A DNA stretch of 64,000 nucleotides from Trichosphaerium sp. ATCC 40318 (Eukaryota > Protista > Tubulinea): assembly GCA_038496445.1 (NCBI GenBank), contig JALMLS010000564.1:446755-510754 (forward strand), given 5' to 3'. Of this stretch, positions 16,250 through 44,119 are shown piece by piece. A model generated the notes under the pieces. The model searched no databases, was not told where the DNA came from, and saw nothing but the letters and a program-made list of their open reading frames with translations. Position numbers and translations under genes: made by a program. Numbering within the stretch: the stretch's first letter is position 1; each line of letters starts with the position of its first letter.

Positions 16250-18035
16250 ATGCTGAGTGCAGGTCGCTTACGCGTTGCACTCAACGCAGAAAGAACAACA
16301 AGATGTATGTCACGTTTATTTAGCCTCAATACATTAATAAACATATTAAATAGCCCTGCAAGGTACTTGGAACAGTATAGAGAACCAACGAGCTAGATTT
16401 GATGAGGTTGGACGACATCTGCGGGTTATTACCCTAGATCAGTGGTATAACATCAGAGTAGCAGAAGTCCGCACTAATGGAGCTGCTGGAATACTTGACA
16501 GGCAAAACCACCACGTACAAACATTACTCATCTTTGTTAGATATGGAGATTCCCTCTCGTTCGCTCTAAGCACGATATACAACGACTACGATTGGATACC
16601 ATCGAACTTTAGGTTAGTAACACCGACCAACTAGCACGTGTTGACAAAAGACACTAAGGCACGCTCCTCATGGATATTGGGATAGCGTAGAGAATCAACG
16701 TATCCGTATGGAAGAAATAGGACAAACGTTAGGTGTCAAAATTTACAATGATTGGTGTTATATAACAGCAAAACAAATTGCAAAGTTTTCAACTGTATTA
16801 GTGAACATGTGAGTGCATAAGTAATAGGTTCATCCAATCCACCATTTACTTTTACGTCAGGTACAACGGATCTGTTTATAAACTAGTGCAGTCTTTATAC
16901 TCTAAGCATACATGGCATGAACATGATTTCAAGCACGTGGTACTTGTTAGTATTGCTTCTAAAACTACTTTAGTGTTTTACTTGATGACCAAGCTCGTTT
17001 GAATGAGCTTGGATACAAGTATGGAATATCTACATTGTATGATTGGTATAAAGTATCGTACCAAGATGTCATTAACGATGGAGGAAGGTCCATATTAAAA
17101 AAGTACAGCACTTAAATTGATCCACCAGCAGTGTTTATTCCTATATAGGTATGAGTCATTGGCACAAGCGCTCAAGTCCTCGTATCCAAATTACGAATGG
17201 GACACATGGAGATTCACTAGAGACTACAAAAGGTTATTGAGTATTTGGACAACCATTTATTGATCCCTACTAGATCTCATACAAAACCTCGTAAAGCACC
17301 AAAAGAACCTGTTTTTATAATTCCTACCAACAGGTATTATTTGTACTAGCGAGTATAGTAACTGACATTACTACAATAGAAAAGTCTTGTCACCAAAGCG
17401 ACTATCTCTTCTTTCTAAGTTTAACTTTATTGCAACGAGACTAGGTATCAAAGATATTGAGGGCTGGTATAAAGCAACATGCAAGGATTTACATAAATTT
17501 GGCTGCCGCAATATTACTCTACAGTAAGTACGACAGCACTACAGAGATTTGATTAACTCTGGTAAGGCATGGTATGGATATGTCAAGAATTATGAGCTAT
17601 GCGTATCCACACTATAACTGGCAAGAGTGGAAATTCAGGTGACACATAGCAATTTCAGTAATTTCACTAACGTTACCAAAGAAAAAATGATATTGCTCCA
17701 TCAGGCTACTGGCAAAATTATAACAACCAAGCCAAGTTTTTACGTAAAGTAGAAGGCTTTTTGGATATATCAGATCCTACACAGTGGTATAGAGTGTCAA
17801 AGGCGGATTTCCATAGATTTGGTGCTAGTGGCCTATCTGCTTATTTTCCAGAGATACTGGGAAATCACTTCCCTTCAGTACCTTGGAACTTCAAAACTTT
17901 TAAAACTATAACAACAAAAACAAAACAAAGGTGAGACCTTGTTAGCTCTTGTTGCCTTCTCACTTACTAATCATTTTACTAAGAGATCTTTTATCATGTG
18001 CCAAGCACTTGGTTACTGTTGAGTTAAATACATAG
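16250..18035 (+). CDS. Trp-rich ~70-aa repeat protein (5 repeats), probable mitochondrial presequence, no C-terminal nuclease
   Basis: Manual splicing through about 10 short introns gives five copies of G(Y/T)W...NQ...LG(I/V)...WY.(V/I)...GG...Y...L...YP.Y.W..W.F. N-terminus MLSAGRLRVALNAERTTRS. No ORF-track entry because the exons are short. Confidence 0.8.
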
Positions 18036-39338: not shown

Positions 39339-41783
39339 ATGCTCAAAAAAAGCTCCAGTGGTGGTATTACAGGCAATAGTACGTTTGTGAAATTCAACGT
39401 AGCAAGCCCGTTGTCAAAAACTATACCAGACAGCAATCGACAATGCGTGTACGTGTACCGACAATGCTTTGCCGTAATTACTGTTAGTGGGCGCAAACGC
39501 AAAAGTAGCGCGTTTTCAGGTAGTAACAACCCGTTGATCGCCAATTACAGTTCCCCAACAAAGAAACGAGCAGTCATTCGAGAGGTCTCCGTCCCTACCA
39601 AGACAGCACAGAAACCACCTTCCAAAGACTTGATTCTTCCATTGGTAGGCGTTAAAACTGAGTCCAACGAAGCTCTTGACGATGAGCAAGCGAGGAAAAA
39701 TACAAATGCTGGAATAACCCGTATTCTCAAGGATCATAATCCGCTCGTTGATTCAACCTCCATCGTACGCTCTTGAGTCTGTAGTATCGCTAACTAAAAG
39801 GCAGGCTGTGGCCATTGAACGTGCCATTTATTCCCAATCAAAAACACAGCCTGGCTTGACGTACGTCAAATGCGCAGCCAAGGTAATAGAGCTTATCTAC
39901 GGTCCAACCAGACGCGCTTTGAGAGCGGCAGTGTTGGCAGGAAAGGTAAAAAATAATAGACCATACTTTCTAACTTAAATTTAAGGCAAGTGCCACCGAA
40001 CTTGTTGAGGCTGCGGTGCCTCTCAAAGAAATCAAGGAAGAAGACGATAAAAAACTACCAGAACCGCTGAAAGCTTTGGAAGAGCATGCAGTCGCAGCGA
40101 TAGACACTTATTTGCGTACAGTAGAAGATTGTATTGATCAGTTCCAATGTATCAAGCGAGAAGTAAATTGGGATGTGGCGTACAAACCCAAACTTGGTAT
40201 ATTTGTACACTTTGTTGGTAAACGAGATGAGTTTGTGGTTAAAGATTGGAGCTTACAGTTGAAGTCTCGACCAGTGGTAAGTCGTAAATCGTAATAGTTT
40301 CGTTGTATAATAATCAAGTTCTTCAATAGAAAGCTCCTTCGTGGTTGAAGCCCTTGGAAGATAAAAAGCAAGAAATCGCTCCACCTGCACCTGTCCCTCT
40401 TAAATCGCCGAAGATTGAATCACCGCGCACACTGATAATGACATTAGCCGCCCAGTCTGAGATTGAAGATGTAGAAATGGATACTTCTGATACTGTTGTT
40501 GAACACCACATACCACATTTCAACAAGCGCCCTCCCAAACGTACTCCCAAAGTGACTCAACGACCAAAACCTGTTCCAAAATCAAAACCTAAAACTCGAG
40601 CACCTAAGGCGCGAGACAGAACAACAAGGAAGCGTAAAGAGCACTACAACAAACCCAAAACTTTTAGAAAGAATCAGCGTATTCGGACTGTTCGTCCACC
40701 TAGTGAGCCAACAGGGTACTTTCAACCAGAGAGCCACGGAACATTTGTTAATACACCACAATCTGTACCTCCTAGAACGTTTACAACGCCACGGGAGCCA
40801 GTGCCACAAAACTTTTCACAACCAATATCAAATGCACCTCGACTCCATCACAATACATATCAACAACAGCCTGTACAACCGCTGGTTCCTCAACCAAATT
40901 TTAGTGCAGAAGAGATTGTAACAATCTTACAAAATCATATTGCTGCTGTTGTACGTACAGATCCAGTAGCAGCACTGGCAAATGCCATCACATCAGCCAG
41001 CCAACTACCTCAGCAAAATACGTATGGTGTATCACCACAACCTCCTCAAGCCCCGCCAGCATACCGAGCACACCATCCACCACAACCTGTTACAGGACCA
41101 GACCATTATGGAGTTTATCAACAGACGAATGTTCCTCAACCTGTGTTGCAACCTACCCAAATACCTTTTGTTCGAGCGCCTCCTGTCAATGCACTCTCTA
41201 GATTGGATAGTCGTGATAAGTACGGATACAGAGGCAGTACAGGCGCCCGAGCGCAGTGGTCTGGGATGTTAAAATGGTGGAATGAGTACGTTTTTCTATC
41301 CTTTTGGTTTTTATGTTTGTTGACCCTACCTTAATTGTTTTATAAGAAAGAATGGTTCGTGGCAAGTTATTTGTGAGGTCATGAGTCATACGTGTACCCT
41401 TCAACTACCTTTTGAACTATTGTGTAATGGTAAAGTAGCGTGAATATTATGTTTTAAATCTAATTTGTTTTCATAGCAAGAGTCAGCAATGATGAATTGG
41501 TAACCCTTAATCAATTACCCACATTCACTTTAATATGTGGTTCTAATGATCCTGTAAACATACAGGAATTTTGCGATTTCTTTGACTTCTTGGGTAGGCA
41601 GATTGAAGTTTTTGGTTTAGTTGCATGTCAACTTTTACTAAAATGTATTATATAGGTCGTGATAATATTGTAGCTACAACTGAAACTCCAAGTTACAAAC
41701 TGTATTTTATGCCACAACGTTCGTCAAGAGTAACTGCTTCAACACAAATAATATGTAGTTACAAAAAGACTGTTCTTGTGTAA
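39339..41783 (+). CDS. Pro/Gln-rich nuclear protein with possible C-terminal SPOC-like domain
   Basis: Multi-exon frame with basic NLS-like segments and a long Pro/Gln region; C-terminus WSGMLKW...LP.EL...ARV...F.DFFDFL...KLYFMP resembles SPOC. Confidence 0.5.
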
Positions 41784-41968
41784 AGAGTGTAAATAAATGA
41801 ATAAAAAAATTACAATGAAATATTATCTATTGTACATTCGGTTAATCATTCAGTCTGGATTTCCTTGGTTAGCAACTTATTGACAATGGCGCAGACATTG
41901 GTGCATGTTCTATATAGTTATTATTTTTTAAAGCATTGCCTACAGTTGCTCTTAGACTCATTCCTTTC

Positions 41969-43950
41969 TTATAATGACGCACCTTTGAAAGTGTGAACCA
42001 ACGGTTTTGCAGTAGACGATAGATCTGCAGCTAAATCAGGCCTACAGCGGTTAATTGAACAAACACATATGTTTCCTTAGTACACTAACCTGAAGTGAAT
42101 TATAGTGGCAATTATACTATCACGATCTCCAGTCCAATTGTACGGTATGGGAACAATAGTGATGCCTATTTTGCAAATTCAGAATAACAATGTTAGTTTT
42201 GAACATACCAATAGAATCACAAATTTGGGACTTTTCTGCGTCTCTGGATTGCTGTAAAAGAACAGGTTCAAACCTAGCATACGAAGAGTCGACATAGTGC
42301 TGTTCTCCTTGATACTCTAGAGCAATATCAATACCAGAAACAAATACATCCAAGATTATTTGTTGTGACTCTGTTGGCATGTACTCCTCGAACACACTGG
42401 CGCGTGGAAATATTGTTCTAACGCAAGTTGCCAACTTTCTATTGTTACAACAATTAATTATGTGATACTCACAAAATGGTAGTTAAAGAAAATCTGTTGT
42501 ACCTTTGCATGGCACGTTTATCACGATATAATAAATGTTTGTATTTCCAATGGTAGTCGGGATATGCTCTCTTTAATACGGAATGCCAATTTGTCAGAAG
42601 GCTTGCTCCTCCAAGCAACCTGATATCTCTCTTTGGGTAATACTTAGACAACGGGTGAGTAAGGTATTGGCACTTACTTGAGCAACCCTATACCAATCAG
42701 CGTATGATTGTATTCTAAGTTTTTTTGTTGCACTATTTAGGAAAGCACGTGCGTTGGAGAGAACGCTAAAGTTTTGTGCTTTGGCTAAAGACCAATAAGT
42801 TCAATGCACAAGACAATCTTGTGGTACTGAATTTCCATGGGATCCATTTATAATCTGCATACATATATTTTAAAAACCCTGCCACTGATCTAAATATTCT
42901 ACGACTACATTAGTATAAACAGTAACGTTGAATTATCATACGTTTGTATAGATGCACCGACTAGTTGGTTAACTTGTCTTATGCTTATTTTGTACCAGTC
43001 TTCTAGAGATGTGATATTCAATTGCTTCTCCAGCTATAGAATGTTTAACTTAAACAAACGATATTGTAATTACTTTTCGAGTAATAGTCTCTAGGTTGCC
43101 AGGCACGATCCAAAAGTTTCTGTGAACACGCTCTATTATGTTACAATCGAACTTAGGTGGAGTATGAAGTAGCGTACTAAATTTCCAGGGCTCCCAATCG
43201 AAATCAGGATAAAAGTATGACAAGACATTACGTAGGGAATAATCAAATGTTCTATTTTGAAAAATTTTAATCTTAGGCTATCAATGCATAACGTACTGCA
43301 CCAGTGTCCCTCCACCGGCCTTATTCATGTCGGTGACAATAACGTTATACCAATCACTCACTTTTCTTATATTCAACCGTGCTTCGAGCTTTAAAACAAA
43401 GTGAGTATTGCGTACTCTCTAAACTTTTTTTGGTAGTGTTTTATAAATTTTAGTACCATGCGCATGCAAGCAAATTGGTTGCTGAATGATTTGTAAAACT
43501 TGTGAGGCTTTTTGCCTAAGTAACGTTGTAAGACAACTGGAAAAACTTGGACATTGTGAAAATGTGTCATTTCATTATTGACATTTTGACACGTACGAAA
43601 TCTCCATATATCCCACTTGTGGTCTGGGTACACGAGTCCCAGGAACTGAACTAGAGAGTGATTGCATAATTTCATTGCTGTACCACCTATTTTTACTACA
43701 TCTTCAGCGATAAATTTGTACCAGTCATCAAGCTCTTTTATGCCGCGTTCGCGCTCAAACTAACTTGTTTTAATATGCCGCGCGTACACTTGACAAAATG
43801 AACCTGTATAGCGATTGAATTTCGGTTATCTGGAAGCGCCCAAAAGCCTTTAGGGTATCTTGGAACACTTTGGCTTGAGCCAGTAGCTACAAATTTATTT
43901 CGGCGTTGAATAGCCCGGTACTTGCTAGTGGACCAAGCTGCAACCTTCAT
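41969..43950 (-). CDS. Trp-rich ~70-aa repeat protein (4 repeats) with C-terminal RAP/DUF559-like PD-(D/E)xK nuclease domain; paralog of 16250-18035
   Basis: Repeats such as PKGFW..PDNR...GIKELDDWYK...GG...SLVQFL..VYPDHKWDIWRF; C-terminus LDVFV....ALEYQGEQHY...QQSRDAEKSQICDSIGITIVPIPYNW; Arg/Ser-rich N-terminus. Confidence 0.82.
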
Positions 43951-44119
43951 TCTCACTGTGTCATTGGGTTTTTTTGATTAACCCACCGTACTTCTTTAGA
44001 ATGCTACACAAGCGTTAATTTGCACTAATTATGTGATTGAGTGGTATTTGCGTTGAGTTATTCAATACATTTCAATTTTTGCACGTTTTATTTAAGCTAC
44101 TTTTTGTAAACTCAACGAC

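Follow-up and report, generated by a model that had tools for sequence, protein, structure and literature searches.

Helical-repeat proteins with a tail of the RAP/Vsr fold play a central part in how plants, algae, apicomplexans and animals express their organellar genes. They include the FASTK/FASTKD proteins, the OPR-RAP proteins of Chlamydomonas, the HPR-RAP proteins of apicomplexans and the RAP proteins of mitoribosomes, all of which place a leader and a helical array ahead of a Vsr-like domain and build the array from helical hairpins of 34–40 residues. PPR, PUF and TALE proteins, modular readers of one base per repeat, are also tandem arrays, in which every unit combines a conserved framework with a handful of hypervariable polar positions. 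The nucleases of the Vsr, DUF559 and DUF2726 groups and the EDxHD homing endonuclease I-Bth0305I have the signature D...E-x-(D/Q)-G-x-x-H in common and either stand alone or carry Zn-finger or HTH heads. A further domain of relevance here, DUF4046 (PF13255), is found mostly in Bacillota and has no known function.

The stretch of 64,000 nucleotides of DNA from Trichosphaerium sp. ATCC 40318 that we analysed (hereafter the window) contains a gene, gene A, with the same order of leader, helical array and Vsr-like tail as the RAP proteins. In place of helical hairpins, its array consists of ~70-aa, five-helix units predicted to adopt the DUF4046 fold. RAP domains are good fold matches of the tail (Z 9.3–9.4), and RAP proteins and the family of gene A both show large lineage-specific expansions; however, the RAP sequence profile fails on this family, in which some proteins are fusions with DNA ligase or Pol X domains. 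The best fold matches of the tail are Vsr/DUF559/DUF2726 enzymes and I-Bth0305I, with which it has the catalytic signature in common, but the head of gene A is a tandem repeat array. A single repeat has the same predicted fold as DUF4046, whereas the eukaryotic proteins contain it in long arrays, together with a leader and a nuclease, and their sequence matches to DUF4046 reach at most the Pfam cut-off. With PPR, PUF and TALE proteins the Trp-rich repeats have no homology, and unit size and fold are different. An array of helical repeats followed by a Vsr/RAP-fold tail is already known; here it is made from an unstudied repeat.

Gene A is a real, spliced and expressed gene, because spliced Logan contigs from three public RNA runs (X1, X2 and X3) align to window positions 41800–44100. 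A single 1,458-nt contig of run X3 covers 41820–43933, and five of the joints are independently backed by runs X1 and X2. The coding region runs on the minus strand from 43950 to 41869 and is divided into 14 exons by 13 introns of 40–81 nt, all of them GT..AG on the minus strand (joints of the CT..AC type on the plus strand). In minus-strand order, the exons span 43950–43804, 43759–43596, 43514–43457, 43388–43297, 43251–43178, 43132 (or 43130)–43074, 43033–42942, 42898–42828, 42784–42678, 42630–42503, 42438–42208, 42164–42089, 42040–41982 and 41938–41869. When joined and translated, they read from an ATG at 43950 to a stop codon at 41871–41869. The initial annotation had proposed a spliced gene ending at 41969; its splicing is borne out by the contigs of the three runs and its start codon is correct, whereas its end has to be moved, as an extra 3′ intron (41939–41981) shifts the stop 100 bases further. 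About 500 bases past the 3′ end of gene A lies a Pro/Gln-rich, low-complexity ORF of 329 aa (40345–41334, plus strand).

The region between exons 43251–43178 and 43132/43130–43074 is contested. This intron, intron 9, ends in tAGAG, and its tandem acceptor (AGAG at 43131–43134, minus strand) offers a proximal AG, which gives a 45-nt intron, and a distal AG, which gives a 47-nt intron (junction 43130>43178). The sole assembled contig that crosses the junction, from run X3 at a depth of ~10, uses the distal AG, which causes a frameshift and a stop after ~220 aa. The frame is kept by the proximal AG or by retention of the intron, and the full protein of 475 aa is made only with the proximal AG. 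The alignment of the in-frame product to the family repeat model is gap-free across this junction, and a single frame is maintained through all eight introns that follow intron 9; because of these two features we have taken the 475-aa protein as the intended product of gene A. Alternative splicing at the tandem AGAG could switch the product from a fragment with two repeats to the complete nuclease and back.

The 475-aa protein begins with a leader of 29 residues (43864–43950, minus strand, as are all further features of gene A), which has six K/R and no D/E and resembles a mitochondrial presequence, in line with the basic, acid-poor N-terminus noted in the initial annotation. Its domains were delineated with a repeat model to which only other organisms contributed sequences (~1,000 repeats) and a C-terminal model built from 80 other proteins. 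Repeat 1 comprises residues 30–105 (43511–43863, introns included; i-E 3.6e-21), repeat 2 residues 101–181 (43125–43606, introns included; i-E 2.4e-27) and repeat 3 residues 176–254 (42780–43187, introns and the contested junction included; i-E 5.2e-23), the last being gap-free only in the proximal-AG product. Repeat 4, a degenerate last copy, comprises residues 256–319 (42538–42776; i-E 2.4e-17). The C-terminal domain, of Vsr/DUF2726-type PD-(D/E)xK character, spans residues 324–441 (42017–42525, two introns included; i-E 1.4e-36). The four Trp-rich repeats and the C-terminal motif reported from the letters alone were therefore recovered by models to which this organism had not contributed. 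The two parts of the protein differ in charge, the repeat array being basic (pI 9.9) and the C-terminal tail acidic (pI 5.8).

A six-frame scan of the window with these independent models returned exactly nine repeats, the number counted in the initial annotation. Four belong to gene A and five, at 16350–17931 on the plus strand, to a paralog, gene B (16251–17931, plus strand), which has a presequence-like start (MLSAGRLRVALNAERTTRS...) and whose gene model was derived from the genomic sequence alone. The scan detected no second nuclease domain anywhere in the window, the region downstream of gene B included. Repeat 1 of gene B contains a 13-aa in-frame insert (~16501–16539) that a 39-nt GC..AG intron would remove, and its last repeat (17698–17901) is intronless. 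In both genes, introns recur at two places per repeat, behind the first helix and behind the GG..L segment. The use of the same two sites in successive repeats suggests exon-pair duplication as the way in which the arrays expanded.

For structural analysis we turned to the full-length protein that most closely parallels gene A: P0081 of Heterolobosea sp. BB2, which has 467 aa and is 32% identical to gene A over 424 aa. The AlphaFold2 model of P0081 (pLDDT 92.8, from an alignment of 70 sequences) shows the array followed by an alpha/beta domain of the Vsr-like type, which is the arrangement of helical repeats plus RAP/Vsr fold that had been expected. In this model each repeat of ~70–72 aa is composed of five helices of ~14, 6, 6, 6 and 8 residues; a lone repeat was modelled with a pLDDT of 87.8. 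Across 1,001 repeats the conserved framework comprises W, NQR, DWY, GG, LL, YPEH, W and KF, and the most variable positions are polar ones, at 37, 40–42 and 53–54, around the GG turn. Such variable polar positions are what a reading head would look like, although a resemblance of this kind is no proof.

The repeat is distinct from PPR, OPR, HPR, TALE and PUF units, as had been proposed: in addition to the size and five-helix composition of the unit, no Pfam match to PPR, OPR, HPR, PUF, TALE or FAST families was obtained in gene A, gene B or ten relatives. Searches of Pfam, NCBIfam and PDB sequences with single exons gave nothing meaningful, and no solved structure was matched by sequence with profiles built for either the repeat or the C-terminal domain. 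As a model, the lone repeat matched neither a solved structure (Foldseek E>9; the best VIA hit, a TetR HTH at Z 4.3, is at noise level) nor any Swiss-Prot model. Weak Myb_Rap1, SAM_TNK and CH matches, together with the GG turn, had prompted the idea of a SAM, HhH or Myb-like domain, which we dropped on the outcome of these lone-repeat structure searches (E>9, Z 4.3 and no Swiss-Prot model match).

In the ESM Atlas, the lone repeat superposes on a Bacillota cluster (TM 0.74 over 78 aa, rmsd 2.5), 98% of whose members carry DUF4046, and also on clusters from Tubulinea, Discosea and Nucleocytoviricota. The whole-protein model of P0081 matches DUF4046 proteins (Foldseek E 2.4e-8 and 2.2e-7) and, over the full length, bacterial proteins named “DUF559 domain-containing”; language-model features likewise group the repeats with DUF4046. 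By sequence, the Pfam DUF4046 profile (cut-off 22.8 bits) matched none of the repeat exons of the window, family member P0239 scored 21.7 bits, and other members flagged as DUF4046 in precomputed tables had no match when rescanned. The kinship with DUF4046 that the initial annotation had raised as a possibility is accordingly one of fold, and not of clean sequence membership, because the Pfam profile stays at or under its cut-off on proteins of this family.

The C-terminal domain of P0081 (residues 346–463) superposes best on Vsr (1cw0, VIA Z 10.2), I-Bth0305I (3r3p, 9.8) and NGO0050 (3hrl, 9.2). Close behind or among these are the RAP domain of human FASTKD4 (9.4) and a T. gondii mitoribosomal protein (9g6k_Li, 9.3), and further matches are an ATP synthase subunit of Polytomella (6rd4_2, 8.4), Tetrahymena mL104 (7.7) and a second T. 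gondii mitoribosomal protein (6.6). Judged from this homologue model, the C-terminal domain of gene A is predicted to belong to the Vsr/DUF559/RAP branch of PD-(D/E)xK folds, in agreement with the fold named in the initial annotation. In alignment A4 of the domain, columns G59, H62 and D81 are invariant and D45, E56 and K84 show conservation of at least 90%. All six residues are retained in gene A, as D361, E372, G375, H378, D397 and K400. The putative catalytic core (42297–42356) is formed by D361 in ILDVF and by E372-x-Q374-G-x-x-H378 in LEYQGEQH, and D397 and K400 form the RD..K helix motif SRDAEK (42231–42248). The third metal-site position is Q in gene A, unlike the D of the Vsr/DUF559/DUF2726 signature.

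At the level of sequence the picture is different from a RAP assignment, which was part of the initial annotation and does not hold. The DUF2726 profile (PF10881) matches 34 of 81 C-terminal domains of the family at E<=0.1, including that of P0081 (26.5–26.7 bits against a cut-off of 24.7), whereas Pfam RAP (PF08373) matches one of the 81 (E 0.031) and has no match to the C-terminal exon of gene A even at E<=10. The largest single exon of the intron-split domain of gene A had no DUF2726 match; the nuclease exon matches PHROG families of homing and HNH endonucleases (E 1.6e-6 to 4e-4). Based on these comparisons the domain appears DUF2726-like and not Pfam RAP.

The same EY[QH]Gx[QH]H domain is carried by more than 455 phage and giant-virus loci, the best 80 of which are 30–50% identical over the matched segment. 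The viral copies sit in ORFs of 120–450 aa without repeats, and the partners in ten scanned ORFs included treble-clef Zn fingers, DUF723 or HTH domains. None of the best 80 loci (L003–L082, IMG/VR viral contigs) has Trp-rich repeats beside the nuclease domain. By sequence comparison, then, repeat-less phage and giant-virus nucleases appear to be the closest relatives of the gene A nuclease domain. In a quick tree, one branch separates repeat-linked from viral domains (SH-like support 89, on a short alignment). With P0081 as the sole query, no viral relative was found, and a tblastn search of GenBank phages gave no match to the array and only four weak matches to the nuclease exon, all in Clostridium phages.

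Gene A is a member of a very large family of eukaryotic protists on which no published study was found. A profile of the nine repeats of the window, searched against 1.84 billion representative proteins, identified 8,313 proteins (50%-identity clusters) at E<=1e-3, of which 1,416 passed E<=1e-30; an HMM search from these copies, in Amoebozoa and beyond, had been suggested in the initial annotation. The family is spread over Amoebozoa, Heterolobosea and marine protists, with hosts that include Physarum polycephalum, Cavostelium apophysatum, Copromyxa protea, Echinamoeba exundans, Heterolobosea sp. BB2 and the sources of MMETSP transcriptomes. One protein has as many as 25 repeats, and 97 of 151 sequences fetched from the top matches end in the same C-terminal motif. 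The arrays are basic (median pI 9.05), and the N-terminus before the first repeat has at most one acidic residue in its first 20 aa in 99 of 135 members. At one locus (L001, 6001–8218 of GCA_025450795.1), four adjacent called ORFs each contain the Trp-rich repeats; they are probably one eukaryotic gene that contains introns and was broken up by a prokaryote-style gene caller, and split calls of this type would inflate member counts from such sources. We found no publication on DUF4046, on this family or on the combination of repeat array and nuclease, which accords with the view that the class is uncharacterised; the available portions of a RAP survey and of a recent Acanthamoeba mitochondrial proteome paper make no mention of the Trp-rich repeats.

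Several relatives carry an added ATP-dependent DNA ligase of the Lig E type (phmmer 8.8e-35 to 8u6x), and one carries a polymerase of the Pol lambda/beta type (5e-26); Physarum P0234 has its ligase joined to repeats without a nuclease. A Vsr-type nickase, a Pol X polymerase and a ligase together follow the logic of short-patch DNA repair. The explanation that we favour overall, with about an even chance of being correct, is that gene A combines a leader, a nucleic-acid-binding array and a nuclease to act on mitochondrial DNA. The leader would probably send the protein to the mitochondrion, where the basic array of four Trp-rich DUF4046-fold units would probably lie along nucleic acid and the acidic PD-(D/E)xK domain, assigned by fold from a homologue, would probably cut or nick what the array holds. 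Acid-poor leaders and basic arrays would fit mitochondrial import and nucleic-acid binding, respectively. Such a module could serve as a recognise-and-nick unit in the repair or recombination of mitochondrial DNA or in conflict with selfish elements; paralogs and orthologues that add DNA ligase or Pol X domains may nick, fill and seal in one chain, and repeat number and sequence may set what each paralog binds. DNA is somewhat more likely than RNA to be the substrate, because ligase domains of the Lig E type or Pol lambda/beta domains are present in relatives; the DUF2726 and PHROG matches and the viral loci lean the same way. Against this explanation, these fusions occur in other family proteins and not in gene A, the conserved NQR motif is mostly lost from the gene A repeats, the sole assembled contig across intron 9 is out of frame, and the RNA-associated RAP domains fit the fold about equally well.

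A tentative alternative, which we hold to be possible and by analogy draws on FASTK, OPR-RAP and HPR-RAP proteins and on the RAP proteins of fragmented-rRNA mitoribosomes, is an organellar RNA-processing factor whose array would read mitochondrial RNA and whose RAP-like domain would bind or trim RNA ends. The common layout of leader, helical repeats and C-terminal Vsr-like domain speaks for it, as do the superpositions on FASTKD4, on both T. gondii mitoribosomal proteins and on mL104 given above; T. gondii mitoribosomal proteins are also the best whole-chain Foldseek matches, and the nearest AFDB cluster bears the automatic UniProt name “RAP domain-containing”. Presequence-like leaders, basic arrays and a large, fast-diversifying family, as in PPR and OPR proteins, are consistent with such a role as well. 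However, the 34 DUF2726 matches against one for RAP, the viral DNA-type nucleases as nearest sequence relatives, and fusion partners that are DNA ligases and Pol X DNA polymerases and include no RNA enzymes all argue against it, and DUF4046-fold proteins in Bacillota and bacterial proteins with an array plus DUF559 (AFDB) occur where there is no organellar RNA. The emphasis that the initial annotation placed on organellar RNA processing is for this reason shifted here towards DNA, to which the ligase and Pol X fusions of relatives point.

Two further explanations are less probable still. Gene A may be a decaying or regulated-off paralog whose main mRNA encodes the ~220-aa two-repeat fragment without the nuclease, as the frame-shifting 47-nt intron in the only junction-crossing contig (X3, depth ~10) would imply. 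We regard this as unlikely: a single long open frame persists through the eight introns past the shift, the models give strong scores to repeats 3 and 4 and to the nuclease domain, none of the catalytic residues is lost, and tandem AGAG acceptors often yield both isoforms, of which an assembler reports a single path. Even more improbable is that the repeats form a protein–protein scaffold and that the PD-(D/E)xK domain is non-catalytic, for example in a structural subunit of a mitochondrial complex. The RAP-fold ATP synthase subunit of Polytomella (6rd4_2, Z 8.4) offers a precedent, and the lone repeat matched no nucleic-acid-binding fold above noise; set against these are active-site acidic and histidine residues that vary little or not at all among hundreds of diverged members, the basic arrays and the fusions to DNA enzymes.

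Returning to the explanation of a module acting on mitochondrial DNA, a more specific form of it would have the DUF4046-fold units as modular DNA-reading repeats, each unit making contact with a set number of bases by way of the variable polar positions near the GG turn. We consider this version improbable. If it were true, protist mitochondria would hold natural programmable nickases, ligases and polymerases that could be described as “TALEN-like”, and the expansion of paralogs would reflect many distinct targets in mitochondrial DNA or selfish elements; an array that reads sequence would also provide a new programmable nucleic-acid-binding scaffold. More generally, the layout of the RAP proteins is here rebuilt with a different repeat, one that lacks a solved structure and is present in thousands of protein clusters in protists, and the association with DNA ligase and Pol X domains suggests an undescribed route by which these organisms may maintain or police their mitochondrial DNA.
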